A stretch of DNA of 64,000 nucleotides, from positions 124,001-188,000 of the IMG/VR virus record IMGVR_UViG_3300024054_000362. One strand, given 5' to 3'. The notes under the pieces were generated by a model that saw only the letters and a list, made by a program, of their open reading frames with translations, was not told the origin of the DNA and did no database searches. Each line of letters begins with the position of its first letter. Position 1 is the first letter of the stretch. Both the position numbers and the translations under genes were made by a program. This document shows positions 6,765-51,766 of the stretch, piece by piece.

Positions 6765-7649
6765 ATGCTCACAGTCTATCGACAGCAAGGGTTCGGCTTA
6801 CCGCTGGGCCAAGGAGCGGCGCCGTCGTCGGCGATTGATCAGGCCGCCGCGACGCTCATGGTTGCGCTCGAAGATGGGACCGTTCCCGAGGGCGTCGTTG
6901 CGATGCTTCGAAATTTCTCAGCCCTCGATCTGACCTTGATCGCCGGTCGCGCCATCGGCCTGGGGGCGAACGCGGCTCTGGTGCGGCAAGCAGTCGAGGC
7001 AGCTGCCGGAGCGGGGACGGCGAGCCCGACAGCTCAAGCCGACCCAACCACCATCCGACTACTACAGGCGCAGATCAATCGATTCTTCGTCGGTTCATTC
7101 GGCATCGCGCAACAGATGGCCGAGACTGGCGTTATCGATGCTGAGACCGTCGCGCAGCTACCCCGCGCGGCACAGATCGCATTGGACATAGCAGGCCCGT
7201 TGGATCTTAGCGCGATCGCAACGCTGGCTCCTGCCGCGGCCGCCAATCTAAACGCACAGGGAATCGCGCAGAATGCGTCCGCGCTCGTCGACGCCTTCAC
7301 GCGAATCATAATTCCGGCTGCAGAAGACGCCGCGATCGCGGAGCAAGCTACCGTCGAGCTGGTTCACGAAGACATCTCCGCCGAGCAACGTCCGAAGATC
7401 GTCGCCGCGGCGGCGCAGGCAGCAGCTCAGGTCAAAGCGCAGGGCGGCTCGCAGGCTGAGCAGCAAGCAGCCGCCCGGACGGCTGCACAGCAAGCTGTCG
7501 TCGCCACCAAGAAGAAGTTTTTCGACGTGAAGAATCCGAAGTTCTGGGTCGCCGTCGGTGGTGGCGTCGCTGCCGTGGTCGTGATCGGCGCAGCGATCAA
7601 GTTGTTCGCCCGCCGCCCCGCCGTCATGGTGACACGCGCCGCGCGCTAG
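6765..7649 (+). CDS. Ala-rich putative virion protein with C-terminal membrane anchor
   Basis: C-terminal FWVAVGGGVAAVVVIGAAIKLFARR hydrophobic helix plus basic tail; N-terminal QGFG/PLG motifs. Confidence 0.7.
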   Translation: MLTVYRQQGFGLPLGQGAAPSSAIDQAAATLMVALEDGTVPEGVVAMLRNFSALDLTLIAGRAIGLGANAALVRQAVEAAAGAGTASPTAQADPTTIRLLQAQINRFFVGSFGIAQQMAETGVIDAETVAQLPRAAQIALDIAGPLDLSAIATLAPAAAANLNAQGIAQNASALVDAFTRIIIPAAEDAAIAEQATVELVHEDISAEQRPKIVAAAAQAAAQVKAQGGSQAEQQAAARTAAQQAVVATKKKFFDVKNPKFWVAVGGGVAAVVVIGAAIKLFARRPAVMVTRAAR

Positions 7650-7945
7650 CAGGTCGGCTTGCGTCGTGCGTAGAACCGACCGCCAATCGCGCCCACAGTG
7701 ACGGCACCTGCCGCGGCGAGGCCTGCTTTGAGGCCTGGCTTTGGTGCAGGAGCGCCAGCGACTTTTTGAAGTTGACGATCGCGCGTTGTGGCGATGAAGA
7801 ACCCCGCGGTTGCGGCTACTAGGCCGATAGCACCGCCCGCGAGCATGCCGTAGATGCCGCGTTCTTTCTTTGGCGTGAACGAGCACTCGGCGTCCGCCAA
7901 GGCGTCATCGTGGTTCCGTCGGCGTCCGAGCGTGGCCTTCTTCAT
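7646..7945 (-). CDS. small two-TM membrane protein
   Basis: MKKATLGRRR N-terminus, two hydrophobic segments; ATG 7 nt after a -10 box. Confidence 0.65.
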   Translation of the reverse strand: MKKATLGRRRNHDDALADAECSFTPKKERGIYGMLAGGAIGLVAATAGFFIATTRDRQLQKVAGAPAPKPGLKAGLAAAGAVTVGAIGGRFYARRKPTC

Positions 7946-7952
7946 GTCGTTG

Positions 7953-7978
7953 AAGTTACCACGATCGCGCGAGCGATC
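7953..7978 (-). promoter_or_regulatory. putative late promoter, palindrome 7963-7978 + GTGG + TAACTT
   Basis: 24-nt inverted copy of the 6729-6752 element. Confidence 0.7.
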
Positions 7979-8033
7979 GACACACCCAGAACGGCCGTGC
8001 GCAGATGTCAAGACGATCTGTTAGGCTGCGGAT

Positions 8034-8246
8034 ATGGCGAAACGAAAGCGCGCTCTTGCCGGCCTGATGGACACGGTTCGTGCGGGATGCCGCGTCACGA
8101 TCGTCGATCGTTTCGGCGCGCAACGAACGGGTCGTGCCGTCATGAAGGGACCGCACGGCTGGGTGTTGAATCTCGGAGGACGACACGGAACCCCTGGGAT
8201 CGCGAGCGCGGATAACATCGTCAAGGTCAGCTGTTCGAAGAGGTAA
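8034..8246 (+). CDS. small beta-rich basic protein, paralog of the N-terminal half of 53831-54346
   Basis: RVTIVDRFGAQRTGRAVMKGPHGWVLNLGGRHGTPGIA vs RVTIVTPQGQQRTGTAVMRSSHGGWVLNMGGKHGTPGIA; TAGGCT lies 6 nt before the ATG. Confidence 0.7.
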   Translation: MAKRKRALAGLMDTVRAGCRVTIVDRFGAQRTGRAVMKGPHGWVLNLGGRHGTPGIASADNIVKVSCSKR

Positions 8247-8255
8247 GCTCCGCGG

Positions 8256-8680
8256 ATGGCGACCGATTCAGAGATCGCGTGGGCGGCTGGCCTGTTCGAA
8301 GGCGAAGGTAGTTGCTACGGCACCGTACGCAGCGATCGTTACAACACGAGGCGAATCCGTATGAACTTGCGGATGACGGATCAAGATGTCGTTGAACGCT
8401 TCGCGAAGGTTGTCGGTGTCGGCTCCGTATACGGCCCCATTCAACACGTGCGCGCCAGCGACGGCGTCCGGTTGAAGGACGTGTACGAATGGGGAACGGG
8501 TAGTTGGCACGTCGTCGTTGATCTGTACGCGTGTTCAAGCCGTGGTTGTGCACACGACGGCGTGGACAATTTGAACACGCGCTTCAGACAGCAAAACCGA
8601 AGTCGCCGGTTCGGCGCGCACACAAACTTGGTCCCAGACAAAATTTCAACTACAAGCAACGTACCGAAGTGACGCGATGA
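8256..8680 (+). pseudogene. free-standing LAGLIDADG endonuclease, frameshifted near 8532
   Basis: IAWAAGLFEGEG motif; the natural continuation FKPWLCTRRRGQFEHAL resumes in another frame at 8534 and ends at TGA 8680. Confidence 0.7.
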
Positions 8681-8722
8681 TCCTCAACATCACCAACGTT
8701 CGTTGCAGAAAGAAGAAGTGAC

Positions 8723-9408: not shown

Positions 9409-9430
9409 GTTGGGTGTCCGTTTGCGTCTT

Positions 9431-9457
9431 GGTCGCCGGAGGTCGACCCCGTTTTTT
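9431..9457 (+). terminator. possible intrinsic terminator
   Basis: GGTCG/CGACC stem followed by a T6 run, downstream of the Nudix gene; stem is weak. Confidence 0.3.
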
Positions 9458-10522: not shown

Positions 10523-10603
10523 CCGTCCCTTTCAAAGGACCAGACGCCGCGCAGCTCAGGATCTGACAGGTCGACCGCCCGTTCCCGACGAATCTCGGGT
10601 AAG

Positions 10604-11007: not shown

Positions 11008-11041
11008 GATGGAACGCCCGCGGGTGCACAACCCGCACGAT

Positions 11042-13354: not shown

Positions 13355-13987
13355 ATGATTCTGAACATGAGCAACCTCAAGGGCTACCAAGTGCGCCTCG
13401 CGTCCGATCAGAAGGACGAGATCCGTGCTCTGTATCTCGGCGGAACGCCGTATCAGAAGATCATCAAGCAGTTCAAGTGCAGCCCGAGCAGCTTCTGGAA
13501 CGTGGTTCGCGGTCTCCAGTTGCAGGTGCGCGACGAGAAGTTTCAACAGGGCGTCGTACAGATGCAGGCGCTCGCCGACGCACAGAAAGGCTGGATCGCC
13601 GGGATCGTTGACGGCGAAGGCTACGTTGGGCTTGTCGAGAACGCGACGCCGAACCGCGCAACGTCGCTGACGCCTCGGATCGATGTACACAGTGCGACGA
13701 GGTGTATGCAATTAGAGCTGCGACGCCTAACAGGCATCGGCTATATCGGCCGTAAGCAGCGACCTGAAAACCAACGAGACGTCTTCGGTTGGTCGCTGTG
13801 GGCTGTCGAAACAGTTGGACCGTTCCTTGAAGTCATCACCCCGTATCTGATCGTCAAGCGACGCGTGGCGCACGTCGTTTTGGAGTTCTGTTCGCGCCGC
13901 CGCGCGTTGCGCGGCCAACCGTACGACGCTCGCGACTGGCACGCTCTCAAGCGTGTTCGTGAGCTGAACAAGCGAGGTCGATCGTGA
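13355..13987 (+). CDS. LAGLIDADG homing endonuclease with N-terminal HTH
   Basis: GWIAGIVDGEGYV...FLEVITPYLIVKR. Confidence 0.85.
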   Translation: MILNMSNLKGYQVRLASDQKDEIRALYLGGTPYQKIIKQFKCSPSSFWNVVRGLQLQVRDEKFQQGVVQMQALADAQKGWIAGIVDGEGYVGLVENATPNRATSLTPRIDVHSATRCMQLELRRLTGIGYIGRKQRPENQRDVFGWSLWAVETVGPFLEVITPYLIVKRRVAHVVLEFCSRRRALRGQPYDARDWHALKRVRELNKRGRS

Positions 13988-15291
13988 GCAAAATCGAGCT
14001 TTCCATCAAAGTGGACTACCTTCCTGAATGGGGGGCATGGCAGGGAATTCGCGAGCTGATTCAGAACGGCAAGGATGCGGAGACGGAGTTCAACGCTCCG
14101 CTCGACGTCTCGTTCCACAACGGCACGCTCCGCATCGAGAACGACGGTGCGGAGATGCCGCGCGAGTCGCTGCTCTTCGGCGCCACGACCAAGGCGGACC
14201 GCAAGGACATGATCGGCAAGTTCGGCGAGGGGCTCAAGCTCGGCACGCTGGCGCTGGTCCGCAACGGTCACGAGGTCAAGATCCGGACGGGCAACGAGGT
14301 CTGGACGGCTTTCATCGAGCGCAGCGAGAAGTACGACGCGGATGTCCTCAAGTTCGACTGCGTCGGTGGTCGCGAGCCCAAGAAGCGTGTTCGCGTCGAG
14401 ATCGGGAACGTCTCCGAGGAGGTCTGGAACGAGCTGCGCGAGCGTTTCCTGTTCCTCGCCAAGTTCAAGAAGGACGAGCGGGTCAAGACGGGTCGCGGCG
14501 ATCTCCTCATCGGCGATCGGTTCCGCGGGCGCATCTACGTCAAGGGCATTTTCGTTCAGACCGACAAGCGCCTCAACTACGGCTACAATTTCTACGACGC
14601 CACGGTCGATCGCGACCGCAAGATGGTCTCCTCGTGGGAGTTGGAGTACAAGACCAGTGCGATCTGGGGTGAGGCAGCGGAGGCGCGTCCCGATCTCCTC
14701 AAGGCGTACTTCCAGCTGATCTCCGACGGTGACGCCGACATCAGGTCGGAAGCCGTCTACGCCCCCAAGAAGGTTCGCGAGGCGGTCGCGACCAAGTTCG
14801 TGAAGCAGTTCGGCAAGGACGTCGTGCCTGTCGCGAATCTGGCCGAGTCGCACGAGGTCGAACACCTCGGCAAGCGCGGTGTTGTCGTCAACAAGAGCCT
14901 TGCCTCGATCCTCGCCGACACGCTCGGTACGAAGGACACGATCATGAAGGCGATGCGCGAGGAGGTCACGCGCAAGCTCGCCTGGGGTGATCTCGACGAG
15001 ACGCAGCGCACGAACCTGTTCGATGCGCTCACGATCACCGGCGCGGTCCGTCCCGAGTGCACGCTCGATCTCGTCGACGTCGTCGACTTCCGCTCAGAGA
15101 CGCTGCTCGGTCAGTTCAAGGACGGCCGCATCCTGCTCGCGGCGCGCATCCTGACCGACCGCGACGAAACGCTCGCCACGCTCGTGCACGAGTACTCGCA
15201 CAAGGTGGGCGGCGACGGCGAGAAGGACCACGTCATGGCGATCGAGAACCTCTGGCGCGACATCGTGAAGCACCTGCGCAAGGGTGCCTGA
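13984..15291 (+). CDS. GHKL-type ATPase with C-terminal HExxH motif
   Basis: RELIQNGKDA (N box), IENDG (G1), GKFGEGLKLG (G2); LVHEYSH near the C-terminus. Confidence 0.8.
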   Translation: MSKIELSIKVDYLPEWGAWQGIRELIQNGKDAETEFNAPLDVSFHNGTLRIENDGAEMPRESLLFGATTKADRKDMIGKFGEGLKLGTLALVRNGHEVKIRTGNEVWTAFIERSEKYDADVLKFDCVGGREPKKRVRVEIGNVSEEVWNELRERFLFLAKFKKDERVKTGRGDLLIGDRFRGRIYVKGIFVQTDKRLNYGYNFYDATVDRDRKMVSSWELEYKTSAIWGEAAEARPDLLKAYFQLISDGDADIRSEAVYAPKKVREAVATKFVKQFGKDVVPVANLAESHEVEHLGKRGVVVNKSLASILADTLGTKDTIMKAMREEVTRKLAWGDLDETQRTNLFDALTITGAVRPECTLDLVDVVDFRSETLLGQFKDGRILLAARILTDRDETLATLVHEYSHKVGGDGEKDHVMAIENLWRDIVKHLRKGA

Positions 15292-19129: not shown

Positions 19130-20662
19130 ATGCGAAACCAACGAGCACCCATGCAGAAGAACTGGTTCGACGTCGACCGTAAAGGTCTCGCCAAGCTGAT
19201 CGAACGGCGCGGCAAGATCGCGCTGCTCTTCGAGCTGGTCGGCAACGCACTCGATGCGGACGGCGTGACAACGGTCGAAGTTGTGTTGGAGCCCGTAGAA
19301 GGTGTTCCACACGTCGAGGTGACCGTGTCCGACGACGCCCCCGACGGCTTCACGAACATGTCCCACGCGTGGACGTTGTTTGCAGAGTCGAGCCGGAAGA
19401 GCTACGCCAACAAGCGCGGTCGCTTCAACCTCGGCGAGAAGCTGGTCCTGGCACTCTGCAATGAGGCGTCGATCATCTCAACCAAGGATGCCGTGATGTT
19501 CGATGCACGTGGGCGTACGACCATGAAAGCGCGGCGTCCGCGTGGCACCGAGTTCTACGGCATCGCGCGCATCACGCGCACCGAGCTGGCCGAGATCACG
19601 CTCGGTCTTCGACGATTGATCGTCCCGGAGGACGTGACGATCATCGTCAACACGGAGAAGATCCCGACGCGTAAGCCGATCAAGACCGTCGAGGCTACAC
19701 TCGCCACCGAGATCGCCGACGAAGACGGCAACCTGAAGCGCAGCACACGCAAGACCACGGTGAACATCTACGAGCCGCTGCCTGGCGAGACGGCCTACCT
19801 GTACGAGATGGGGATCCCGGTCGTCGAGACCGGCGACCGGTGGCACGTCGACGTCCAACAGAAGATCCCGCTCAACATGGATCGCGACAACGTCACGCCC
19901 GCGTACTTGCGTGACGTCCGTACGCTCGTCGTCAACGCGCTTCACGAACAACTCTCGCCGGACGACGCCAACGCGACGTTCCTCAACGAGGCGCTCGCGG
20001 ATGAGAACGCCACGCCGGAGACGGTCGCGAAAGCGCTCGACCTGAAGTACGGCGAGAAGCGTGCGATCTTCGACCCGAACGACGCCGAAGCGAACATGAA
20101 TCTCACGTCGCAGGGCTACACGTTGATCAAGGGCGCGCAGCTCACCAAGGAACAGTGGACGAACGTCAAGAAGCACGACAGCGAGCGCACCAAACCGGCA
20201 GGACAGATCGCGCCGACGAAGAAGGCGCGGTTCTCACCTGACGGTGTGGACCGTTGGGTGCCGCGTGAGAAGTGGACGGCGAACATGGTGCGCGTTATCA
20301 ACTACACGCGCGACGTCGCGACGGAGTTGCTCGGTGCTCCGGTCGCCGTCAACGTTCTCTCCGACGTCACCGAGAGTTACGCCGCGTGCTTCGGTGATCT
20401 CGGCTTCGTGTTCAACCTCGGTCGGCTCGGTCACAAGTTCTTCGACCGCGCGATGAACGAGTACGCGCCAAACGACGAGGCCCCGTCGGGATCGTATCGC
20501 CCGTCCGTCGAGCTGAACCAGCTCATCATCCACGAGCTGGGACATCACTTCGAACACAATCACCTCGACGAGAAGTACCACGAGGCGCTTTGCGATCTCG
20601 GCGCACGAATGGTCAAGCTCGCACTCACCAGGCCGACGCTGTTCTACCGAGGCGTGAACTGA
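19130..20662 (+). CDS. second GHKL-type ATPase with C-terminal HExxH motif
   Basis: FELVGNALDA, VSDDAPDG, GRFNLGEKL; IIHELGHHFEHNH; start is 19130 or 19151. Confidence 0.8.
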   Translation: MRNQRAPMQKNWFDVDRKGLAKLIERRGKIALLFELVGNALDADGVTTVEVVLEPVEGVPHVEVTVSDDAPDGFTNMSHAWTLFAESSRKSYANKRGRFNLGEKLVLALCNEASIISTKDAVMFDARGRTTMKARRPRGTEFYGIARITRTELAEITLGLRRLIVPEDVTIIVNTEKIPTRKPIKTVEATLATEIADEDGNLKRSTRKTTVNIYEPLPGETAYLYEMGIPVVETGDRWHVDVQQKIPLNMDRDNVTPAYLRDVRTLVVNALHEQLSPDDANATFLNEALADENATPETVAKALDLKYGEKRAIFDPNDAEANMNLTSQGYTLIKGAQLTKEQWTNVKKHDSERTKPAGQIAPTKKARFSPDGVDRWVPREKWTANMVRVINYTRDVATELLGAPVAVNVLSDVTESYAACFGDLGFVFNLGRLGHKFFDRAMNEYAPNDEAPSGSYRPSVELNQLIIHELGHHFEHNHLDEKYHEALCDLGARMVKLALTRPTLFYRGVN

Positions 20663-27176: not shown

Positions 27177-27584
27177 ATGCCGAACCTCAAGCACCTCGCG
27201 ACGAATTCTCGCGTCCGAAACATTTTTCAGAAGCACCTCAGCGCGCTGACGCGCGATCTCGTCGCACTTTCGCAGATGCAGACGCAAGAGCTAACCGAAG
27301 AGCTGACAACTGCGATGCTCGCGAACTGGGGGCTCACGAACGAAGATCTGCAGCTCCAATCTGTCGGTCCGGTGGTGGAGTTGCATGCGCTCGTGCCATC
27401 GGCGTTGATCTACGACACCGAAACGCGACGATGGACGTGCCCGCGCTGTCACGTGTTCTCGGATCACCGACGAAGATCCGTGACAGCGCACCTGCGTTTC
27501 TGCAAGGCTGAGCCTCCTGTGGCATCGATCCCGCTGCGAAATGTGCCGCGGAAGAAGCCCCGCCCCGTCAAGAAGACCACATGA
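27177..27584 (+). CDS. hypothetical protein with zinc-finger-like tail
   Basis: WTCPRC...HLRFC; GGAG RBS. Confidence 0.6.
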   Translation: MPNLKHLATNSRVRNIFQKHLSALTRDLVALSQMQTQELTEELTTAMLANWGLTNEDLQLQSVGPVVELHALVPSALIYDTETRRWTCPRCHVFSDHRRRSVTAHLRFCKAEPPVASIPLRNVPRKKPRPVKKTT

Positions 27585-28516
27585 CCACACTCGAAACGGC
27601 TGTCACGCGAAGCAGAAACCTCCGGCCTCGGACGAAGCAGTTGTACTTGCAACACGTCCGTGCGTTCCTGACCTTCGTTCGCGAAACGAAGGCGGGTACG
27701 GATACTCAGAAGGACATCGCCGAGGTTGCGATCACGGATGCTGACTTCACGCAGGAAGTTGTTGTCGCGTGGTGCGACGACATGCGCAGCCGGAAGATCA
27801 AGCCACAGAGCGTCAACGTCGCGCTCAACGCACTTCGTTACGCGGCAGATCGCGCCGACTGCAAGAAGTTCGTCGACGGTGTCGACCGTCTTCCTGTGCG
27901 ACAACATCGAACGCCTTCACAAGCGAAGGCTGCTCGTGCTCTCACGTGGAGCGAAGGCAAGCGTTTGGTCGCCGCGTGTGACGGGTTGCGAGGCCGGGAT
28001 CTTCGCGACAACGCCATCATCACTCTCGGTTTGCGCACAGGAATGTTGCGTTTTTCGATGTGTCAACTCACGTTCGAGGATATCGAGGACAACTCGTTGA
28101 CCTTCACCAAGAAAGGCGGCGGACGGCACTCGATCGTTCTCGACGCCGTAACCTATGCTGCCTTGCGTGCGTGGATGGACTGGCTGACCGCGCGTGATGA
28201 GGAACAAGGACCCGTGTTTCGTTCTCTCGGACGGCAACGCATCAGCCTCGACGACGACGTGTCGATCGGAGCGCAGCTGACGCCCGACGGGCTATACCGC
28301 GCACTTCAACTACGCGCCAAGGAAGCAGGTCTCGGGGATCTTCGACCACACGTTTTTCGAAAGACGTTTTTGGCATGGGTCAAGCGTGCAGGCGCGAGGC
28401 CACAACAGATCGAGGCAGTGACGGGTCACAAGTCTGACGGTATCGGCGATAGCGACGACGCGGGTGAAGAGGCAGCAAACCTGCTGCTGCCCGATTGGGA
28501 CGGAAACCTCAAGTGA
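27581..28516 (+). CDS. tyrosine recombinase-fold protein, probably catalytically inactive
   Basis: RDNAII...TGMLR, PHVFRKTF, TGHKS; no Tyr after GH. Confidence 0.8.
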   Translation: MTTLETAVTRSRNLRPRTKQLYLQHVRAFLTFVRETKAGTDTQKDIAEVAITDADFTQEVVVAWCDDMRSRKIKPQSVNVALNALRYAADRADCKKFVDGVDRLPVRQHRTPSQAKAARALTWSEGKRLVAACDGLRGRDLRDNAIITLGLRTGMLRFSMCQLTFEDIEDNSLTFTKKGGGRHSIVLDAVTYAALRAWMDWLTARDEEQGPVFRSLGRQRISLDDDVSIGAQLTPDGLYRALQLRAKEAGLGDLRPHVFRKTFLAWVKRAGARPQQIEAVTGHKSDGIGDSDDAGEEAANLLLPDWDGNLK

Positions 28517-34745: not shown

Positions 34746-34997
34746 ATGATTGCCGCGATCGAGCTACCAGACAAGCTGTGCGTGATCCGTTGGGTAGGTC
34801 GTGAACGTCTTCACGTAGCCGTAGTAACCGTCTGTGGCACCAAAATGAACGTCGACAGAGGCGTAGTGCAAGTACCGGACTTCGTTCTCGATGGTCGGCC
34901 CGTCATGAGCTTCTCCGACTTCGACGGCCAGGGCCGTCGTCCGCTCAAGATCTGCGAAACCTGCAAGAACGCGATCGCGGCTGCGATCAAGGGCTGA
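34746..34997 (+). CDS. hypothetical protein
   Basis: VCGT...ICETC motifs. Confidence 0.5.
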   Translation: MIAAIELPDKLCVIRWVGRERLHVAVVTVCGTKMNVDRGVVQVPDFVLDGRPVMSFSDFDGQGRRPLKICETCKNAIAAAIKG

Positions 34998-35742
34998 CGC
35001 GCGGGTTCAGTAGTCGATCGCGCAGCGCCAGTTGCTTGGCGGCGCGAAGCGCTAGGGCGCTGATGCCGATGACGGCGACGAGGCCGAGTGTGCCGATGGC
35101 CAACTTGGTGTTGGGCGACATGCCTGCGATCGGTGTCGGGGTTGCGGTCGTCAGGACTGCGTTGGCGAGCTGAGGGCCTGCATTCGCGGCACCGGCCACG
35201 GTGAAATGAACGCCGTCGGAGGTGTGCTCAGCGTCGCGTGTCAGGTTGCGTGCATCGATCGTGTGATCGACACCGAAGACGTTTTGCATCACCTGCAACA
35301 GGGTCGGTGCCCCTTGCGTGTAATGGTCGTTTGTGTACGACGGTGGCCCGATCGCGAAGACCTCTGCTCCCATCGCGCGATACGCATCGCGGATCTTCGT
35401 CATCGCGTTCGTAGTTTGTGCAAGCGCGGCAGCCGTCAGGCCTTGATCGATATCGTTCGTACCGAGCATGACGATGACCTTGCTCGGACGAAACGTACGG
35501 TCGCTTGCGAGAAGGCCCGCGCTGTCTTCGTTTGAGAAGAAGCTCTGTGCCGAGCGACCGACGCGCGCATCGATGCGGACAGCTTGCGCGCCACCGTTGA
35601 GCAACTGCTGACCTACGATCTCGCCGGGCGCCGACGACGCCGTAACACGTTTGGCGAGATCGACGATCGTCGGGCCGCTATCGCTGCCTGGATGCGACAA
35701 GCTGTCGCCGAAGATGATGATGCGTTCACCGACGACGTTCAC
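34987..35742 (-). CDS. SGNH/GDSL hydrolase with C-terminal TM anchor
   Basis: FGDSL, LGTND, DGVHF blocks; LAIGTLGLVAVIGISALALRAAK tail; GGAGG RBS. Confidence 0.85.
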   Translation of the reverse strand: MNVVGERIIIFGDSLSHPGSDSGPTIVDLAKRVTASSAPGEIVGQQLLNGGAQAVRIDARVGRSAQSFFSNEDSAGLLASDRTFRPSKVIVMLGTNDIDQGLTAAALAQTTNAMTKIRDAYRAMGAEVFAIGPPSYTNDHYTQGAPTLLQVMQNVFGVDHTIDARNLTRDAEHTSDGVHFTVAGAANAGPQLANAVLTTATPTPIAGMSPNTKLAIGTLGLVAVIGISALALRAAKQLALRDRLLNPRVSP

Positions 35743-36694
35743 GGCGCCTCCCACGCAACACCGCCGTGGTGGCGAACTTTTTTGCGAGACGGATAGCACC
35801 GTAACCAAGGCCGACGAAGCCGCCTACGAGAAGGAGGCCCGCAAGAAACTGTCGACCGCTCGTTTGTGCGGGCTGCCCAGGTACGTTTGTGCAGATCGGC
35901 AGACTGGCGGACCAAACTGGACGCAGGCTTTGCGCAATGATGCCGTTGGCGTCGTAGACCGGATTGCCGAAGACCTTGCGAGCGCGTTCGATCAGTTGCT
36001 GACCTTCGAACGAATTTGCGTCCAAACCAAGCTTTCGAAACTGCGCCGTCTTCCAGTGATCGACACCGGGAATTGGCCCAACCCAGTAACTGCCGCCCGA
36101 CTGCGTGCAACCTGTCCGTTTTTTGCCGAATGCCTCACACAAAACTCGTTCCATCGGAACCGGGAAGAACGCGCGAAACTCAAGGCCGTCCTGATCGTCG
36201 GCGCCGAGGTTGATGTTCTCGCTCTTGCCGCTCATGACGAGATCGGCGAGTAGAGTTGTCAGAACGCTTGGATCGCGACTTGTTGCTGCGAAGCGGTTGC
36301 CGATGTTGCCGTGACCGGGAACGTTGATCTCGCCGTAGAGTTTGGACGGCTGTGTAAACAGGAGCAGGCCGTTGACGTCCGTCTTGCGGCGCGCGGCCTG
36401 GTTGACGGCGACCTCGCCGACGGCGACACGTTCTTCGACGGTGCCGTCACCGACCTCGCTGTGCATATAGCGCGCGAGCGTATACGTCAACAGTGTGAGC
36501 GGCTTGTCAGCAGGCCAGAAGCCAGATGCTTGGAGCTGTTTCTCCGCGCTCGCACGCATGGCTTCCGGGTCGCAGCGAATCTCTCCTAGCTCGTCGGTAC
36601 GACAGCCCGAATTCAGGATTCGAAGATCGGCGGGACCACCGCGCATCGGCGCGAACTTCGGGTGCCACGTCGGGTAGCAATCAAGCACGGCCAT
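35726..36694 (-). CDS. SleB/Hydrolase_2-like cell wall hydrolase with C-terminal TM and poly-Arg tail
   Basis: LARYMHSEVG...ERVAVGEVAVN; FLAGLLLVGGFVGLGYGAIRLAKK...RGRRRERRR. Confidence 0.65.
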   Translation of the reverse strand: MAVLDCYPTWHPKFAPMRGGPADLRILNSGCRTDELGEIRCDPEAMRASAEKQLQASGFWPADKPLTLLTYTLARYMHSEVGDGTVEERVAVGEVAVNQAARRKTDVNGLLLFTQPSKLYGEINVPGHGNIGNRFAATSRDPSVLTTLLADLVMSGKSENINLGADDQDGLEFRAFFPVPMERVLCEAFGKKRTGCTQSGGSYWVGPIPGVDHWKTAQFRKLGLDANSFEGQQLIERARKVFGNPVYDANGIIAQSLRPVWSASLPICTNVPGQPAQTSGRQFLAGLLLVGGFVGLGYGAIRLAKKFATTAVLRGRRRERRR

Positions 36695-37379
36695 AGCGCC
36701 TCCGTCGACCAAGCGTCATCGCGGCGCCTTTGGCGAAGCGCAGTGCGAGCCAGCTGAGTCCAACGAGTGTACCGAGCGCAGCGACGCCGACGAAGAAATC
36801 GCGTGTCGCGTGGCTTGTCTCTTGAACGGTGACCGCCGTCTGAGGACGATCGCGGAACAGCGGAATGCCGAGTGTCTTCGCGTTCGCGACCACCGATGCC
36901 GAATAACCGTCGACAGGGAGCCACGGCTCGGCGGGGATTCCAACGCCGAAACCGAAATCAGAGAAGAAGCCCGTCGACGGCTTGCCAACGGCCTGTACGA
37001 CAGCTGCGGTCAACGATTGCGGCACGAACAGATCGAAGTGGAGATGCGGTCCACCAGAGAGACCCGTCGAGCCTGAAAGGCCAATCTGTTGGCCCTTGGT
37101 GACCGCTTGACCTTGAGAGATCTGTGCTTGCGAAAGGTGCAGGTAGCGCGAGACGACGCCATCGGCGTGTGTGAGCGCGATGAAGATGCCAGCATCACTA
37201 GAGTCGGTTGGGACGACGCGCGTTGCAACGCCGTCAGCTGCAGCAAGGATCGGTGTCCCGACGGCCAACGGAATGTCAAGCGCGGGATGAAGTCCGGTCG
37301 CGCGCTGCGACCAACCGTCCAGCACTGTCAACGTGACGTTGCTGGGGGCGACGCGACCGAGATCGGGATCGAAAGCCAT
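36681..37379 (-). CDS. M23 family peptidase with C-terminal TM and LG-RRRR tail
   Basis: HPALD, YLHL, GSTGLSGGPHLHF; FFVGVAALGTLVGLSWLALRFAK...TLGRRRR. Confidence 0.9.
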   Translation of the reverse strand: MAFDPDLGRVAPSNVTLTVLDGWSQRATGLHPALDIPLAVGTPILAAADGVATRVVPTDSSDAGIFIALTHADGVVSRYLHLSQAQISQGQAVTKGQQIGLSGSTGLSGGPHLHFDLFVPQSLTAAVVQAVGKPSTGFFSDFGFGVGIPAEPWLPVDGYSASVVANAKTLGIPLFRDRPQTAVTVQETSHATRDFFVGVAALGTLVGLSWLALRFAKGAAMTLGRRRRYGRA

Positions 37380-37380
37380 T

Positions 37381-38019
37381 TCATGCTCGACGACGGAAGT
37401 ACTTGGGCGTGCGGTGGTTGCGACTGAAGCGACGGCGGCCGAATCCTGCCCGATGCTTGGGTTTGCCGAAACCTTGAGCAATCGCAATCGTCGGCGTGAT
37501 GATGGGGAACAAGGCTCCGAAGATACCCCAGACGATCGCCCAGCCCACGCTGTCGTTGCGTTTGTAGCCGTGATAGACGCTCGCCGCGAACGACGCCGTT
37601 GCGAGGACGCTCCAGATTATACGAACGGGCGTTGGTAGTCGCTTGAAGATCGTCGTGATACCGTTCGCCTTGGCAAGTGCCGCGTTGATCTGATTCGCCT
37701 GCGCGCCAAGCTTCACGGCACGCAGAGCGACATCAGAGCGATCACTGGCGTCGGGGATTGTCTGAAGAACCGCAACGGCTTGATCGAAGTTTTCAGTAGT
37801 CCCGAACTGTGTAATCAGGTCCAAAAGTCGTTTCGCGAGCGTATTCTTGTCGTCTTCGGTAAGCGCTCCTAAACCATTGAAGTGAACATCACCGTCGGGC
37901 GGCAGATCCCACGGGACTTTCTGAATGCTTCCGCCCCCGCCGGTGACGAAGACCGTCTCGTGCGGATGGACGGGGTAGAGGGTCTCGATACCAAGGGGCG
38001 TCGACACGGCGGCGAGCAT
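37381..38019 (-). CDS. putative virion membrane protein (two TM, Arg-rich tail)
   Basis: Internal NGLG; YHGYKRNDSVGWAIVW...AQGFG; AGFGRRRF tail. Confidence 0.7.
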   Translation of the reverse strand: MLAAVSTPLGIETLYPVHPHETVFVTGGGGSIQKVPWDLPPDGDVHFNGLGALTEDDKNTLAKRLLDLITQFGTTENFDQAVAVLQTIPDASDRSDVALRAVKLGAQANQINAALAKANGITTIFKRLPTPVRIIWSVLATASFAASVYHGYKRNDSVGWAIVWGIFGALFPIITPTIAIAQGFGKPKHRAGFGRRRFSRNHRTPKYFRRRA

Positions 38020-39360: not shown

Positions 39361-39726
39361 GTGAAGTACTCAGTCCGCTACGTTCACAAGGTCACGCAGA
39401 CGTGCAGCTGCAAGCACGTCGAGGGAAGCCACTACAGCTACGTCGCCGATGCGAAGGCGCCGAACGGTCTGCAATGGACCCGCGGCAAGTGCACCGTGCG
39501 TGACTGTCGTTGTGAGGGCTACGAGCCCGACGTCGAGCACCACGATCTGCCAGACGGCGTGCCGGGCGATCGCAACGCGGTTACCAAGATCCTGTGCGAG
39601 CACCGGCTGCTCAGCGGTGGCCAGAAGCTGCAGGAAGTCCGTCGCAACAACGCCGGCCAGGTCGTGTGCTTCCTCAAGAACAGCACGTTTCACTCGATCA
39701 TCCTCACCCGCTCGAAGGGAGCCTGA
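39361..39726 (+). CDS. hypothetical Cys/His-rich protein
   Basis: CSCKHVEGSH...CTVRDCRCEGY. Confidence 0.6.
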   Translation: MKYSVRYVHKVTQTCSCKHVEGSHYSYVADAKAPNGLQWTRGKCTVRDCRCEGYEPDVEHHDLPDGVPGDRNAVTKILCEHRLLSGGQKLQEVRRNNAGQVVCFLKNSTFHSIILTRSKGA

Positions 39727-39728
39727 AC

Positions 39729-40922
39729 ATGAAGATCACGTCTTTCACGCTCGGCGGCGCGTTCGGCATCGACGCGATTCCGGTCTACATCACGTGCACT
39801 GTCGACGCCGATCGGCTCGATGCGTTCAAGATCACCGGTGTATCGCCGGTGCGCGCCAAGGAAATCGAGGTGCGTGTTCGTTCTGCGATCACGTCAGTCG
39901 GGCTGTGCGCGTGGCCAGTCGGTCAGGTGACGGTCGATGTCGATACCCGAGGCGCCAAGTTCCCTTCGGCAGCGCTCGATCTGCCGGTTGCTTGTGCGAT
40001 CGCGGGCGTGAACGTCGACGGACTGCTCGTCGCGGGCGAGCTTGGACTCGACGGGCGCACGCGTCCCGTGCGCGGCATCGTGCAGGCGACGCTCCTCGCC
40101 AAGAGCCTCGGGCTGCGCGGCGTGCTGATTCCTGCCGACAACGAACGTGACGCGAAGGAAACGATCGGCGATGCGATCGACGTCTATGTGCTCTCGCATC
40201 TCGTCGACTTGAACGGCGACATCGACGTTCTGAAGCTCGAATACACGGTGCGAACGTCGCGCACGAGGGCGACGTGTGACTTCTCCGAAGTCCGTGGACA
40301 GTCGGATGCGGTCTTGGCAATTGCAAACGCAGTCCGCACGCGCAGCAACGTGCTCCTGTCAGGACCGCCGGGCGTCGGAAAGACCATGATCGCGCGCCGG
40401 ATCCCAACGGTGCTCTCCGCGATGACCAAGGACGAACAGATCGACGTGACGGAAGCCTACAGCGCGGTCGGCATGTCCGACGGGCTCGTGACCGAGCGTC
40501 CGTTTCGCGCTCCGCACCATACGGTCTCGGTTTCTGCCTTGACGGGCGGCGGGATCGCGCCGCGTCCGGGCGAGGTTCAACTCGCAACCCACGGCGTGCT
40601 GTTCCTCGACGAAGTCGACCAGTTCTCGCGCGGCGCGATCGATGGTCTGGTCTCGACGCTGAATGCGATGCCGGTGGCGTCGCGGCCCCTCGTGGTCGCA
40701 GCTGCGAACCCCTGCCCGTGCGGCTGGCACGGTTCGACGGTGCGTCCCTGTGCGTGTTCCCCGGGGTCGATCAAGCGGCACGAGACGCGGGTCAACGAAG
40801 TGGCCGGGAAGTTGCGCCTGACGGTTCGTGTGGAGCTGCAGCATGTGGATCTCGCCCAGCTTCGTACGGCGCCGGTCGGCGAGTCGAGCGCGACGATTGC
40901 CGCCCGAATCGCCGGCTGCTAG
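39729..40922 (+). CDS. ComM/YifB-like AAA+ ATPase, shortened
   Basis: GELGLDG, DFSEVRGQ, GPPGVGKTM, RPFRAPHHT, GVLFLDE, ANPCPCG. Confidence 0.88.
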   Translation: MKITSFTLGGAFGIDAIPVYITCTVDADRLDAFKITGVSPVRAKEIEVRVRSAITSVGLCAWPVGQVTVDVDTRGAKFPSAALDLPVACAIAGVNVDGLLVAGELGLDGRTRPVRGIVQATLLAKSLGLRGVLIPADNERDAKETIGDAIDVYVLSHLVDLNGDIDVLKLEYTVRTSRTRATCDFSEVRGQSDAVLAIANAVRTRSNVLLSGPPGVGKTMIARRIPTVLSAMTKDEQIDVTEAYSAVGMSDGLVTERPFRAPHHTVSVSALTGGGIAPRPGEVQLATHGVLFLDEVDQFSRGAIDGLVSTLNAMPVASRPLVVAAANPCPCGWHGSTVRPCACSPGSIKRHETRVNEVAGKLRLTVRVELQHVDLAQLRTAPVGESSATIAARIAGC

Positions 40923-41918: not shown

Positions 41919-42506
41919 TCACCCGACGCTTCGAACAGCGGCGCTTCGTGCGAGGCGCAACGCGAGCCAACTGAGTCCGACGACGCTCCCGACTACAACT
42001 AGACCGGCGGCGACCTTTGCACCCGTCGATGACGTCGGCGGCGCGGCTGGCTTCACGAGCGCGAGTTGATCTTTCAACCACTGGTTTGGATCGATCGTGT
42101 TCGGTGGGATGACCCCAAGACGTTGCTTGCGGACCTCCCAGTGCGTGTGCCCAGTGGCCGCGTCGAATTTCGCGAGGAGCGTGCCCTCAAGCACCGTCTG
42201 ACCAGGACGCACCGTGATCGAATTGAAATCGAGATGCGAGAGCAGGTGGAAGAAGCCACTCTTGCCCTGCATTAGTACAACGCCGGGACCGTAGCCGACA
42301 AACGGCGCTGAGTTGCCGTCGGCAACATCGATGACGGTACCGTCCTCGGGTGCGAACACCTGCGGCGCGGTCGCGAACATGTCGACCCCGAAGTGCTGAC
42401 ACGGGAACGTCCCGATGCCGCACGAGCCGTCGGCAGGCGTTTGTCGAACGCACCCGAAGCAACCCGTCCGGTGCGTGTCGAACGGTCCGGTCGGGAAGCG
42501 CGCCAC
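41919..42506 (-). CDS. second M23 family peptidase with C-terminal TM anchor
   Basis: HFGVD, LSHL, GHTHWE, IDPNQWL; KVAAGLVVVGSVVGLSWLALRLAR tail. Confidence 0.85.
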   Translation of the reverse strand: MARFPTGPFDTHRTGCFGCVRQTPADGSCGIGTFPCQHFGVDMFATAPQVFAPEDGTVIDVADGNSAPFVGYGPGVVLMQGKSGFFHLLSHLDFNSITVRPGQTVLEGTLLAKFDAATGHTHWEVRKQRLGVIPPNTIDPNQWLKDQLALVKPAAPPTSSTGAKVAAGLVVVGSVVGLSWLALRLARSAAVRSVG

Positions 42507-42507: not shown

Positions 42508-43122
42508 TTACGCCGCCCTGCGACGACGCGCCATCACGACGCCGACGGTGATCGAAGCCGCAACGATCGCGCCTGTGATCACGAGTGCGAAGAAGCGCTT
42601 GGGAGGCGATGGCGTCGCATCGGCGAGCATCATCTTCTTGCGCCGGGGGATTACAACCACGCCGACGCGGTCACGGAACTGCCAGCGCTGATCGAATTCG
42701 CGGCGTGAGATCGTGCGACGATTGCCGCGAACGTTCGGGTCCATAACGACCACGTTGGTCGGCTTCACCTTGGTGGCGACGACGAAGTGGCCTTGGCCTG
42801 GACGTGTGAAGCTGCGGATCGCTACGATCACTGGAACATCGCTGTTGGTGTACGACCCCAACTCGTCGATGTTGCTGAAGCGCCGTGTCTGTGCGAAGTA
42901 GTTGCGTCGACGGGCGGCCATCGTGACCTGCCATGCCGTGGAGCCCGCCTTGGGATCGATGCCGATTTCGCGGATCAGAGTCGACTCGTCGACGTGATCG
43001 CCCCAGTGTCCCATCACCGCCTTGAGTGCGGCGGCACCGCACGAGTATGGCTGGATCTGTTGGTAGGGCGCTACCTCACCCAACCCAGCATCACCAAGAC
43101 CTTGGGATTGTAGTGCCAACAT
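42508..43122 (-). CDS. C39 family cysteine peptidase with GLG-containing leader and C-terminal TM anchor
   Basis: QIQPYSCGAAAL (Cys), GHFVV (His), VMDPN (Asp); N-terminal QGLGDAGLG; FALVITGAIVAASITVGVVMARRRR tail. Confidence 0.88.
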   Translation of the reverse strand: MLALQSQGLGDAGLGEVAPYQQIQPYSCGAAALKAVMGHWGDHVDESTLIREIGIDPKAGSTAWQVTMAARRRNYFAQTRRFSNIDELGSYTNSDVPVIVAIRSFTRPGQGHFVVATKVKPTNVVVMDPNVRGNRRTISRREFDQRWQFRDRVGVVVIPRRKKMMLADATPSPPKRFFALVITGAIVAASITVGVVMARRRRAA

Positions 43123-49570: not shown

Positions 49571-49623
49571 GGTTTCTCCTGTGCCGTAGCCGGATCCCGC
49601 AAAATGCGGGACGAGGTTCCATG

Positions 49624-49650
49624 AAGCTACACCCGATCGCGCGAGCGATC
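49624..49650 (-). promoter_or_regulatory. putative late promoter, palindrome 49635-49650 + GGGTG + TAGCTT; 5' UTR hairpin at 49595-49611
   Basis: Seen directly in the sequence. Confidence 0.65.
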
Positions 49651-50332
49651 AACGCCGCCTACGATAACGTCGACCTACGCCCGCGCTGCCGTGCCGCTTG
49701 GCGCGCCAACGGGACACGCCATACACGATTCCGGCACCGAGCCCAGCAAGCACAACGGCCGCGCCGGCTCCGACGAGGATCGGATGGTCGAGGGCGAACT
49801 GGGCCGCCGGATGCTTGTTGAGGAAGATCGCTGTGTCGAGGACAGGAATCAGCTTATCGACGCCGGAGCCCGTCGAAGTAGCTGGCGCAGAACCGTCAGC
49901 GGGTACGGGTGCCTTGGCAGCTTCTTGCGCCTTCAAGGTCTGAAGGCGTTCGATCACCTGTGGAAGTGCAGGGTCCTGTGCGATCTGAAGAATCGTGTCG
50001 AGGTGCGGTCCGGCTTGCGTGAGGATCTGTTGGAGCTTCGCAAGCAGCTCGGGAGCCTGCTGCACGATGGCGGCGATGTCGCTGGTGATGTCGCCAAGGC
50101 CGTTCGACATGAAAGGCAGCCGCGCAAGGCGGGACTGCAAATCGAAATCGTCATCGGTCGACCACACCGTCGGCCAGTTCTTGGGCTGACCTGGGATCGC
50201 GCCGACGCCGGCAAGGCCGGGGGGTTGCGGGATGAAATGGAAGACGCGACCAGCGCGTGCGATCGCGTCTTCTTGCGCATCGGTCGAGAGCACTCGCACG
50301 GAGCCGCCAAGCTGATGTTGAAGTGCGAGCAC
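49649..50332 (-). CDS. putative virion membrane protein (internal NGLG, C-terminal TM, GVG-RRYRRRR tail)
   Basis: LVGAGAAVVLAGLGAGIVYGV hydrophobic helix. Confidence 0.7.
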   Translation of the reverse strand: MLALQHQLGGSVRVLSTDAQEDAIARAGRVFHFIPQPPGLAGVGAIPGQPKNWPTVWSTDDDFDLQSRLARLPFMSNGLGDITSDIAAIVQQAPELLAKLQQILTQAGPHLDTILQIAQDPALPQVIERLQTLKAQEAAKAPVPADGSAPATSTGSGVDKLIPVLDTAIFLNKHPAAQFALDHPILVGAGAAVVLAGLGAGIVYGVSRWRAKRHGSAGVGRRYRRRR

Positions 50333-50338
50333 GGTCCA

Positions 50339-50365
50339 AGCCTATCATCGATCGCGCGAGCGATC
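50339..50365 (-). promoter_or_regulatory. putative late promoter, palindrome 50350-50365 + GATGA + TAGGCT
   Basis: GTG start 6 nt after the -10 box. Confidence 0.7.
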
Positions 50366-50418
50366 ACGACTCAGCCTTTGTGCTTCCCCATCGCGGATCC
50401 CGTAGTAGGGTCGCCGAC

Positions 50419-51000
50419 ATGACGATCGAATCTCTCATCGTTGCGATCCTTGCCATCACGGGCACAGCAGCGCCGCACACGTCCAAGAATGCGCGCGTGC
50501 ACGCAGAGAGCGCACAGGCAGTCGCCACCGTCGATTTCCCGGTCGAAGTTCTCCTCGGTACGGCCTACGTCGAATCGCGCTTCTATCAGACGGCGCTGAG
50601 TCGGTTGGAGGATTGTACGGATCCGAAGGATCCTAAAACCTGCATTCGAAAGACCGGCGTGTGGGCCAGCCATGTACCGCCGCCGACGGCGCGACCGGAC
50701 TGGTACTGTGGGCCGCTACAGACGGGCGGCTGGGTCACGTGGGCCGAGTGTCAGCGGATGCGGACGGACGTGCTGTACGGTTACCAGCAGGGCGTGCGCG
50801 AGCTGACGAAGTGGTGGAACGATCCGAGCTGTTCGCGACTACCGGATGACGATCGGCTGCGTTGTACGCTTGCCGGACACAACGCCGGGTATGCAGGTGC
50901 GGCGAACTACAAGGTCTCGCCGTACGTTCGTGACGTGTTCAAGGCGCGCGATCGGATCGTGAAGATCACCGAGCACGAAGAGTTGAAGCCGGGTAGCTAG
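50419..51000 (+). CDS. lytic transglycosylase (SLT-like) with N-terminal hydrophobic signal
   Basis: AYVESRF (catalytic Glu), GPLQ, AGHNAG, YVRDV. Confidence 0.7.
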   Translation: MTIESLIVAILAITGTAAPHTSKNARVHAESAQAVATVDFPVEVLLGTAYVESRFYQTALSRLEDCTDPKDPKTCIRKTGVWASHVPPPTARPDWYCGPLQTGGWVTWAECQRMRTDVLYGYQQGVRELTKWWNDPSCSRLPDDDRLRCTLAGHNAGYAGAANYKVSPYVRDVFKARDRIVKITEHEELKPGS

Positions 51001-51326
51001 CGGCGCTTCTTGCGGCGGCTCTTGCGCTTGCGCGAGCGGCCGAGATTCGTGGGACAGAGACTGCCGTGGTAGAGCAGCGTGCCGGCAGGGTATCCACGGT
51101 TTTGCCGAGTCTGATTCCGCTCGGTGTACCAGTCGACGACCTTACGGTTCGTCGAGGACGAACACGGCACGTAGCATTGGATGTCGCCGCGCTGGCTCGG
51201 CTTCCCCGACGCCATCGCGACGTCGACGCACTCGCGCGTACTGAGGCCGTGGCGCTGCGCGGCGCGGCGCGCGCTTTTCATTGGGCCCTTGACGATCAAC
51301 GAGACGCTGTTCGCACGTGTCGCCAC
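50997..51326 (-). CDS. Cys-containing basic protein with LG-Arg tail, paralog of the C-terminal half of 53831-54346
   Basis: VSLIVKGPMKS...CV...DIQCYVPC...W...GTLLYHG. Confidence 0.7.
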   Translation of the reverse strand: MATRANSVSLIVKGPMKSARRAAQRHGLSTRECVDVAMASGKPSQRGDIQCYVPCSSSTNRKVVDWYTERNQTRQNRGYPAGTLLYHGSLCPTNLGRSRKRKSRRKKRR

Positions 51327-51328
51327 GG

Positions 51329-51766
51329 TTAGCGTCCTGCGGTGCGGTTCTTGGTGCGGCCCGCGTAGCGGTAGAGCGCGACGCCGAACACTGCGAGCGC
51401 ACCACCGACGGCGAGCGCGCCACCGGCGACGAGCATGTTCGAAACCGTCGGGCTCTGGTTCGCGAGGAACGAGTCGATGCCGCCGAACTGACGTCGGTAG
51501 GGGATCACGGTCTGGCCTCCGTTGATGGACGTGAAGTAGCTGGGGTCGCAGTAGTCGCAGACAGGTCCGCGTGCGGGGTAGCGGCGGCGGTACATCTGCG
51601 GCGTGCCGCCGGGGCCGTAGACCGGTGTCGCGACGCGGGTCGGTCCGACGATGGCCTGATGTGGCGCGAGCGGCTGACCAGCCGATGGAAAAGACACCGT
51701 GGGCTCGTCGCGCAGCCCTGCGAGCTGCGCGTCACTGAGACCTTCCAAGGTGAATACGTGGGGCAC
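51329..51766 (-). CDS. Pro/Tyr-rich protein with C-terminal TM anchor
   Basis: MLVAGGALAVGGALAVFGVALYRY + basic tail; AAGGAG RBS. Confidence 0.65.
   Translation of the reverse strand: MPHVFTLEGLSDAQLAGLRDEPTVSFPSAGQPLAPHQAIVGPTRVATPVYGPGGTPQMYRRRYPARGPVCDYCDPSYFTSINGGQTVIPYRRQFGGIDSFLANQSPTVSNMLVAGGALAVGGALAVFGVALYRYAGRTKNRTAGR

Follow-up and report, generated by a model that had tools for sequence, protein, structure and literature searches.

A 64,000-nucleotide stretch of viral DNA, hereafter the window (bases 124,001–188,000 of the 221,422-bp IMG/VR virus contig IMGVR_UViG_3300024054_000362; G+C content 61%), carries nine genes for proteins that each end in a hydrophobic region followed by a net-positive tail (Table 1). 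The products are an SGNH esterase, a putative SleB-like hydrolase, two M23 metallopeptidases, a C39 cysteine peptidase, a core membrane protein and three proteins without known domains. An earlier interpretation based on the letters alone (the sequence-only reading) had listed these open reading frames (ORFs), all of which are present where it placed them, assigned one transmembrane helix to each, and proposed that they belong to a lipid-containing particle with a cell-wall-degrading toolkit. Our analysis of the whole genome places it, with some probability, in a hitherto undescribed group of very large phages that contain a membrane.

Table 1 Tail-anchored proteins encoded in the window (aa, amino acids; anchor classes are defined in the text)
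Protein	Length (aa)	Window position	Strand	N-terminal or catalytic feature	C-terminal anchor and tail	Anchor class
Tail-anchored protein without known domain	294	6765..7649	+	MLTVYRQQGFGLPLGQ	...KNPKFWVAVGGGVAAVVVIGAAI + KLFARRPAVMVTRAAR	A
Tail-anchored SGNH/GDSL esterase	251	34987..35742	-	Catalytic GDS at residue 12	...GISALALRAAKQ	B
Tail-anchored putative cell-wall hydrolase (SleB/Hydrolase_2-like lead)	322	35726..36694	-		...GLGYGAIRLAKK...RRRERRR	B
Tail-anchored M23 metallopeptidase (M23a)	232	36681..37379	-		...VGLSWLALRFAK...RRRRYGRA	B
Core membrane protein	212	37381..38019	-		Two hydrophobic segments; tail net charge +12	
Tail-anchored M23 metallopeptidase (M23b)	195	41919..42506	-	GTG start	...VGLSWLALRLAR	B
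Tail-anchored C39 cysteine peptidase	204	42508..43122	-	MLALQSQGLGDAGLGE	Anchor + MARRRRAA	
Tail-anchored protein without known domain	227	49649..50332	-	MLALQHQLGG	Tail net charge +10	
Tail-anchored protein without known domain	145	51329..51766	-	MPHVFTLEGL		

A large family of tail-anchored proteins

Tail-anchored proteins were identified by a hydropathy and charge scan that calls one transmembrane segment in the last ~60 residues followed by a net-positive tail, applied to proteins of at least 90 aa. With our own gene calls, 22 of the 270 proteins of the 221-kb genome have this arrangement, and its mirror image (N-terminal basic residues, then a transmembrane segment) occurs in 4. The same script finds none among the 196 proteins of Virus Rctr197k, a tailed jumbo phage used as the tailed control, and 5 of 103 in each of two relatives of the genome, called G004 and G002. 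Tail anchors are thus present in excess over chance.

The family reaches far outside the interval in which the sequence-only reading had described it (window positions 6,765–51,766); the nine genes there are real, and three further clusters lie at genome positions 8.7–16.6 kb, 60.8–67 kb and 92.7–96.3 kb. A single transmembrane helix was found in eight of the nine proteins, the exception being the core membrane protein, in which two hydrophobic segments precede a long basic tail. Additional internal hydrophobic stretches make the genome 64181 protein a further exception to the single-helix rule. N-terminal signal peptides are absent, as had been claimed: upstream hydropathy in the tail-anchored proteins is low, and in the esterase the catalytic GDS is reached by residue 12.

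The anchors include two sub-motifs. Class A (K-x-P-x-[FM]-W...GG...RRRR) is carried by the window 6765 protein and by the proteins encoded at genome 8708, 11402 (SPVFWG), 62201, 63040, 64181 and 66169. The window 6765 protein has no Pfam match, and its C-terminal 45 aa are paralogous to genome 8708–9208. Class B (..G[LI][SG][WYA][LG]A[LI]R[LFA]A[KR]..) is found on exactly four wall enzymes, namely the SGNH, SleB-like, M23a and M23b proteins, and also on SleB-like homologs of other genomes. Its core motif, [AL][LI]R[LFA]A[KR], occurs five times in the proteome, four of these being the class B anchors just named. The string GLSWLALR, noticed in the sequence-only reading, is indeed common to the anchors of both M23 peptidases.

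The N-termini are also distinctive. Eleven of 23 tail-anchored proteins begin with ML, compared with 17 of 247 other proteins (Fisher p = 1.2e-6), and this start is often followed by G[FL]G or GG within 8–22 residues. The peptide ML[AT]x...G[FL]G[QD] is seen in the proteins starting at window 6765, 37381, 42508 and 49649 and at genome 8708, 63040, 64181, 66169, 94828 and 91206. Upstream of the genes at window 6765, 37381, 42508 and 49649 and at genome 8708, 16031, 64181 and 94828 there is no Shine-Dalgarno sequence, and TAnnnT (often TGnTAnnnT) stands 7–10 nt before the start codon, an arrangement suggesting leaderless transcripts. The motif GCGATCGA occurs repeatedly upstream of several tail-anchored genes and also within the repeat of a CRISPR (clustered regularly interspaced short palindromic repeats) array in this genome.

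Five anchored enzymes

Five of the anchored proteins are predicted enzymes, and four of these are predicted to cut cell walls. The names given to them by the sequence-only reading hold for four of the five, with identities that profile matches and intact catalytic motifs establish at the level of prediction. The SGNH esterase, which may act on O-acetyl groups, matches PF13472 (E = 1e-7; 33.1 bits, cut-off 32.9) and PF00657 (E = 4e-6; 27.6 bits, cut-off 23.6), and its blocks I, III and V are intact (GDS12, GTND94 and DGVH176). Both M23 peptidases match PF01551 above the curated cut-off (E = 8e-23 for M23a and 3e-10 for M23b), with intact zinc-binding motifs (H31xxxD and H112xH in M23a; H38xxxD and H120xH in M23b). 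The C39 peptidase matches PF03412 (E = 2e-16; 60.6 bits, cut-off 22), and its alignment to the ComA peptidase domain (3k8u/5xe8) shows that the Gln, Cys, His and Asp residues are all conserved. The GTG start of M23b is needed because the public 153-aa call loses H38xxxD. For the SGNH, SleB-like and M23a genes the better-supported starts were adopted (Table 1); the 251-aa call for the esterase is the same in public assemblies.

The SleB-like label is a reasonable lead rather than a demonstration. The protein has no Pfam match at E ≤ 0.01 and, searched as a 42-sequence profile, no PDB sequence match. However, 82 of its 100 nearest ESM-Atlas clusters are in the set carrying PF07486 Hydrolase_2 (15% of the listed cluster's members), and its structural neighbours are Hydrolase_2 domains, with a template-modelling score of 0.66 over a 138-aa Hydrolase_2 model. 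The family comprises 155 metagenomic proteins, and about 70 of the 120 listed have a C-terminal transmembrane segment and positive tail. In some relatives the SleB-like protein is fused to an SGNH esterase, which indicates that the two adjacent genes are functionally coupled. These fused homologs have an N-terminal transmembrane segment in place of the C-terminal anchor and, by the positive-inside rule, both kinds of anchor would place the catalytic domain opposite the basic residues. This agrees with membrane tethering, and no cleavage motif, as the conserved feature.

The C39 family cleaves double-glycine leaders. The tail-anchored C39 peptidase may likewise remove the shared N-terminal peptides described above as leaders of the double-glycine type.

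A complete genome without detectable tailed-phage genes

The same genome has been reassembled from several JGI and ENA samples at 221.5–221.7 kb with a different start point each time, and a type I-C cas3–cas5d–cas8c–cas7 operon spans the joined ends of the 221,422-bp contig. Thus, the 221.5-kb genome is complete, being either circular or circularly permuted. In each of 11 lake-water metagenome runs, 90% or more of its k-mers are found, and a megablast search with 10 kb of the window gave no DNA-level match among 50,697 deposited phage records. The source is most likely an uncultivated lake-water virus of bacteria.

Whether an HK97 capsid protein, terminase and portal are encoded elsewhere in the genome was a question raised by the sequence-only reading, and none was detected by PHROG, Pfam or six-frame searches. 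The PHROG scans covered each of the 40 proteins with 330 aa or more individually and 193 smaller proteins in two scans, for which the best 25 families were listed. Precomputed Pfam annotations for nearly every gene were gathered across public assemblies of the same genome, and six-frame profile searches used PF05065, PF03237, PF03354, PF04860 and PF04984. PF05065 gave no candidate for an HK97-fold major capsid protein (MCP), and no MCP PHROG appeared among the 40 larger proteins or the families listed for the smaller ones. Six-frame searches for terminase and portal (PF03237, PF03354 and PF04860) returned zero candidates. For tail genes (sheath/tube, tape measure, baseplate), PF04984 gave no candidate, no tail Pfam is among the annotations gathered for nearly every gene, and the only tail PHROG matches among proteins of at least 330 aa are to collagen repeats. 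As far as these profiles can detect, tailed-phage genes are therefore absent.

Several candidates were considered and rejected. A 'terminase large subunit' PHROG match is a HerA/FtsK-type DUF87 ATPase, and 'portal' matches are NUDIX domains. Neither a 758-aa intein-bearing protein, whose intein-free homolog is exonuclease-like, nor a ComM/YifB-like ATPase (window 39666–40922) was retained as a packaging enzyme. The match of a 797-aa protein to phrog_2426, from which a phiKZ-like phage had been suspected, is to a vWA protein also present in Ackermannviridae. A codon-biased block at window 10.8–31 kb was discarded as a virion module, its large proteins being GHKL-ATPase paralogs. Virus Rctr197k is not a relative, since it has only an accessory cluster (genome 41–54 kb) in common with the 221-kb genome and none of its structural genes are shared; its MCP and terminase cluster with PaBG (PMC7412058).

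A conserved core in relatives

A profile of the SleB-like family led to 13 related IMG/VR contigs of 48–196 kb, and in five of these there are no TerL_6N or HK97 Pfam matches. The relative G004 (IMGVR_UViG_3300025936_000002) is complete, with 85,269 bp and 127-bp terminal repeats. Almost its entire proteome was scanned with no head, packaging, connector or tail PHROG match, and only three of its proteins carry a Walker-A motif (an AAA_24 protein and two helicases), none of them terminase-like.

Within the core shared by the 221-kb genome, G004 and G002, a 249-aa beta-rich protein (genome 72831–73580) far exceeds all others in conservation. Its identity to the G004 homolog is 59%, compared with 37% for the DNA polymerase, and the copies of G004 and G002 share 75% identity. 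Its gene ranks at the top in codon bias, and its family comprises 437 unannotated proteins on contigs of up to 232 kb.

Sequence comparison also establishes a linkage of putative virion genes. In G004, G002 and two contigs from metagenome-assembled genomes (MAGs), a block of ~25 kb contains the SleB-like enzyme, homologs of the window 37381 and 49649 proteins, two jelly-roll genes, a small very basic protein, a thioredoxin-like protein and a Gly-rich membrane-like protein; in the 221-kb genome the members of this block are dispersed. The window 37381 protein is kept in all relatives examined (38% identity in G004, 42% in L054 and 39% in L055), with homologs near jelly-roll genes, and both homologs of the window 49649 protein, G4_087 and G2_117, are tail-anchored. 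The N-terminus of the window 51329 protein is similar to small basic proteins of the jelly-roll operon. The small basic protein, encoded at genome 90050–90370 (RRRKRSRKSRR...KRRRRRRK), shares 64% identity with its G004 homolog and may be a protamine-like core protein that condenses DNA. The clade is widespread and undescribed, with contigs of 85 to 232 kb and no detectable tailed-phage morphogenesis genes.

Locus L054 is a 61-kb stretch with the jelly-roll module in a 'chromosome-level' Gemmatimonadota MAG (CP070815.1, 3,658,440–3,719,593). It is bounded by 100-N gaps, so that scaffolding probably placed a viral contig inside this MAG. Gemmatimonadota was accordingly rejected as host: the apparently chromosomal copy is this contig between scaffold gaps, its tRNA-Arg is a false positive, there are no att repeats, and two further MAG matches come from other phyla.

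Two paired jelly-roll proteins

The 249-aa protein is modelled as a beta sandwich (pLDDT, a predicted local distance difference test, of 66; pTM, a predicted template-modelling score, of 0.61). Foldseek returned no significant match for it, and its weak matches are nearly all jelly-roll capsid proteins. A conserved 165-aa family (276 proteins) adjoins the 249-aa gene. The model of the 165-aa protein (pLDDT 92) matches bromovirus coat proteins with a Foldseek probability of 1.00 (E = 4e-4) and also matches HHIV-2. Jelly-roll cement proteins of the tailed phages KHP40 and Pam1 are among the fold matches, and structure searches of AFDB and Atlas returned uncharacterised viral clusters only. Every record checked has both genes, next to or close to each other, or neither of them. 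The models thus establish predicted jelly-roll folds, and these are conserved. The sequence-only reading had suggested looking for a double-jelly-roll MCP (Bamfordvirae); both proteins folded are single jelly rolls.

The small jelly-roll gene of the 221-kb genome has exons at ~86671–86790 and 87120–87536, separated by a group I intron at genome 86763–87084 (L005:6763–7084; RF00028 with 71.8 bits, gathering score 50, E = 1e-17). Just upstream is a LAGLIDADG endonuclease gene (genome 85543–86532, minus strand). A small jelly-roll paralog (genome 191665–192195) lies directly upstream of the HerA/DUF87-type ATPase, whose best solved relatives are defence-system HerA proteins (E about 1e-4).

A proposed particle and its alternatives

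The lipid-containing particle with a wall-degrading toolkit is partly supported, by the enzymes, the tail-anchor excess, the jelly-roll folds and the lack of detected tailed-phage genes. We estimate a probability of roughly one half that the virus forms a tailless particle in which a shell made, like those of sphaerolipoviruses and SPV1, from two single-jelly-roll proteins covers a lipid membrane with ~22 tail-anchored proteins, entry enzymes among them. These proteins would constitute the protein complement of the viral membrane. Each C-terminal helix would sit in the viral bilayer, with the N-terminal domain on one face and the Arg-rich tail on the other, DNA-facing side, where the tails and the conserved protamine-like protein would jointly neutralise the DNA. 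The SGNH, SleB-like and two M23 enzymes, with their ..LALRxAK.. anchor, would arrive together with the membrane during entry and open the peptidoglycan locally, like PRD1 P7, and a separate soluble GH25 endolysin would carry out the final lysis of the cell. More speculatively, the tail-anchored C39 peptidase could trim the ML...G[FL]G N-termini as a maturation step.

A broader proposal is possible, at somewhat under even odds: that these genomes represent an unrecognised global lineage of 85–232-kb non-tailed bacterial viruses with a two-jelly-roll shell, an internal membrane, a protamine-like protein and ~20 Arg-tailed proteins condensing the DNA, no conserved motor, entry enzymes and a C39 maturation protease.

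Several points weigh against a tailless membrane-containing particle. Large N-terminal domains without signal peptides must reach the face opposite the basic tails, although a viral membrane formed around DNA in the cytoplasm could put them there. A packaging ATPase conserved across the clade was not found, and the HerA/DUF87 ATPase has no homolog in G004. The lack of a conserved ATPase recalls SPV1 and, taken with the protamine-like protein, hints at a particle that assembles around condensed DNA. Members of the SleB-like family are also encoded on two contigs that carry no jelly-roll pair. Furthermore, the absence of HK97, terminase and portal genes depends on profile sensitivity, two proteins were folded, and a very divergent HK97 protein may lie among the orphan proteins.

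The alternative that survives best, though we judge it unlikely, is a tailed jumbo phage in which the genes for capsid, portal, terminase and tail have diverged beyond the reach of Pfam and PHROG models, with the jelly rolls as decoration, cement or fibre parts and the anchored proteins acting in the host membrane (lysis control, wall remodelling or superinfection exclusion). Such a phage would account for the DNA polymerase A, ribonucleotide reductase, ThyX, 13 tRNAs, homing endonucleases and CRISPR-Cas, all typical of jumbo Caudoviricetes, for the automatic Uroviricota labels on the Atlas clusters of neighbours, and for the KHP40 and Pam1 cement proteins and collagen-like 'tail fibre' PHROGs among the matches. 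The small-protein PHROG tallies, being the best 25 families listed, leave room for it as well, and all these points count against a tailless particle. However, even highly divergent phages normally have a recognisable large terminase subunit (TerL). It was found neither by six-frame search nor in proteins of at least 330 aa, nor in the complete 85-kb relative with its three P-loop proteins. Large orphan ORFs are also too scarce to make up a myovirus-type tail module, a decoration protein would not be expected to surpass every other gene of its clade in conservation, and the tailed jumbo control has no tail-anchored proteins.

Less probable still is an entity with no icosahedral capsid, whether an enveloped virus of pleomorphic shape or an element resembling a vesicle or plasmid, in which ectodomains point outward, basic tails lie on the DNA and the jelly rolls are spikes, matrix or non-structural proteins. 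The order ectodomain, transmembrane segment, short basic tail is the topology of viral envelope proteins, and many membrane proteins here have basic tails. The small, conserved and very basic protein could serve to condense the DNA, there are three tyrosine integrases as well as ParB-like genes, and the missing clade-wide packaging ATPase, already counted against the jelly-roll shell, fits such an element. Yet among the known pleomorphic viruses of bacteria and archaea genomes measure ~7–16 kb, the ectodomains here lack signal peptides, and strictly paired, extremely conserved jelly rolls fit a shell better. SPV1, moreover, likewise has no packaging ATPase and nevertheless has a jelly-roll shell.

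The sequence-only reading's own alternative, that the C-terminal ends are CTERM/LPXTG-type sorting signals processed by a sortase-like enzyme of virus or host, is very improbable: despite a tripartite look (short motif, transmembrane segment, Arg cluster) and the recurrent K-x-P-x-[FM]-W and ..LALRxAK.. motifs, the required N-terminal Sec signal is present on none of these proteins, the genome-wide Pfam annotations include no sortase, exosortase, archaeosortase or rhombosortase domain, and SGNH-fused homologs swap the anchor for an N-terminal transmembrane segment, so that tethering rather than a cleavage motif is conserved.

Other features of the genome

Replication and nucleotide genes comprise DNA polymerase A (window 61080–64000 and beyond, genome 185080–188835; 1229–1251 aa, carrying a LAGLIDADG_2 insertion and matching UDG weakly), two Prim-Pol primases, helicases, ribonucleotide reductase (the 660-aa small subunit has a large insertion inside), ThyX and dCTP deaminase. 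The genome also encodes 13 tRNAs, MoxR/vWA proteins, GHKL ATPases, CRISPR-Cas and a soluble endolysin of conventional type (GH25 plus PG_binding_1). It is crowded with HNH and LAGLIDADG homing endonucleases, and the intein of the 758-aa exonuclease-like protein lies in the gene at genome 198391–200667. Three tyrosine integrase genes (among them window 27581–28516 and genome 122799–123689) and a gene for a HigB toxin raise the possibility of a temperate or plasmid-like phase.

The virus-encoded type I-C CRISPR-Cas system lies outside the window, at genome 217853–221422 and 61–6230 (loci L010 and L001), and consists of Cas3-HD, Cas5d, Cas8c (670 aa, crossing the contig ends) and Cas7. After the cas genes comes a degenerate array of ~45 repeats of ~36 nt each, ending in GGATAGAAAC; none of cas1, cas2 and cas4 was seen.

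Two GHKL-type ATPase paralogs (HATPase_c_3 / MPN635_N-like; window 13984–15291 and 19130–20662) have very strong codon bias and belong to a family common among phage genomes. The ComM/YifB-type, Mg-chelatase-like AAA+ ATPase (ChlI + Mg_chelatase) rejected above stands between both anchored-enzyme clusters. The accessory cluster in common with Virus Rctr197k, which comes from a denitrifying anaerobic methane oxidation (DAMO)/anammox enrichment, occupies genome 41469–54008 and includes a 624-aa vWA protein (58% identity) and a ThiF-like protein; outside it the two genomes are unrelated. Two beta-rich paralogs of 252 and 452 aa (genome 79845–80603 and 80607–81965) have a common 205-aa C-terminal domain (41% identity) and are not conserved among the small relatives; they may be spike or vertex proteins.

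Implications

To our knowledge, every phage genome above ~100 kb described so far belongs to a tailed phage with an HK97 capsid, and literature searches found no published description of jelly-roll phages this large. Known membrane-containing phages are all small, with genomes below ~30 kb and virions of 50–130 nm (PMC6356626). If the proposed particle is real, jelly-roll and membrane-containing bacterial viruses of 85–232 kb break this size rule, extending jelly-roll membrane-containing prokaryotic viruses about ten-fold in genome size and providing a bacterial counterpart to the size expansion of eukaryotic giant viruses. Metagenomic pipelines would then be assigning an entire virion architecture to Caudoviricetes by default. 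With its two sub-motifs, the tail-anchor signature could serve as a simple sequence marker for such viruses elsewhere, and the anchored SGNH, SleB-like and M23 set is a candidate entry toolkit open to direct expression and assay.

Comparison with known systems

The C39 peptidase has the same catalytic residues as the ComA/LagD type, and many of the tail-anchored proteins have a short N-terminal peptide ending in G[FL]G or GG. Unlike that type, it is tail-anchored rather than fused to an ABC transporter, and the putative leaders lack the canonical LSxxELxxIxGG. SPV1 (Portogloboviridae), which has a jelly-roll shell without a packaging ATPase, differs in that it infects archaea and has a genome of 20 kb; the two viruses share no sequence similarity, and SPV1 has no enzyme set like the one described here.

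Helvetiavirae (P23-77, SH1, HHIV-2 and HCIV-1) encode two single-jelly-roll capsid proteins side by side, an arrangement that the candidate pair described here recalls, and these capsid proteins are among the best fold matches of that pair. Sizes are ~165 and 235–250 aa here and 173 aa (VP16) and 291 aa (VP17) in P23-77, to whose capsid proteins the pair has no sequence similarity. The internal membrane of Helvetiavirae is rich in small C-terminally anchored proteins, and their virions have an associated lysozyme.

PRD1, like Bam35 one of the internal-membrane phages of the Tectiviridae, differs from the virus described here in its 15-kb linear genome, its double-jelly-roll MCP P3 and its conserved packaging ATPase P9, as against 221 kb, two single-jelly-roll candidates and no clade-wide ATPase. 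It has one virion wall enzyme where four are predicted here, in a set of 22 tail-anchored proteins with Arg-rich tails. That one enzyme, the transglycosylase P7 (265 aa), is nevertheless like the anchored enzymes of the window in having a C-terminal transmembrane anchor and no signal peptide. P14, P18 and P34 are likewise C-terminally anchored, and PRD1 has a separate soluble endolysin, P15, as this genome has its GH25 endolysin. PRD1 and P23-77, both internal-membrane phages, served as positive controls for the tail-anchor script; in P23-77, 7 of 29 proteins are C-terminally anchored, including the structural proteins VP6 and VP19. These controls demonstrate that C-terminal anchoring, that of a lytic enzyme included, is a known trait of internal-membrane phages.

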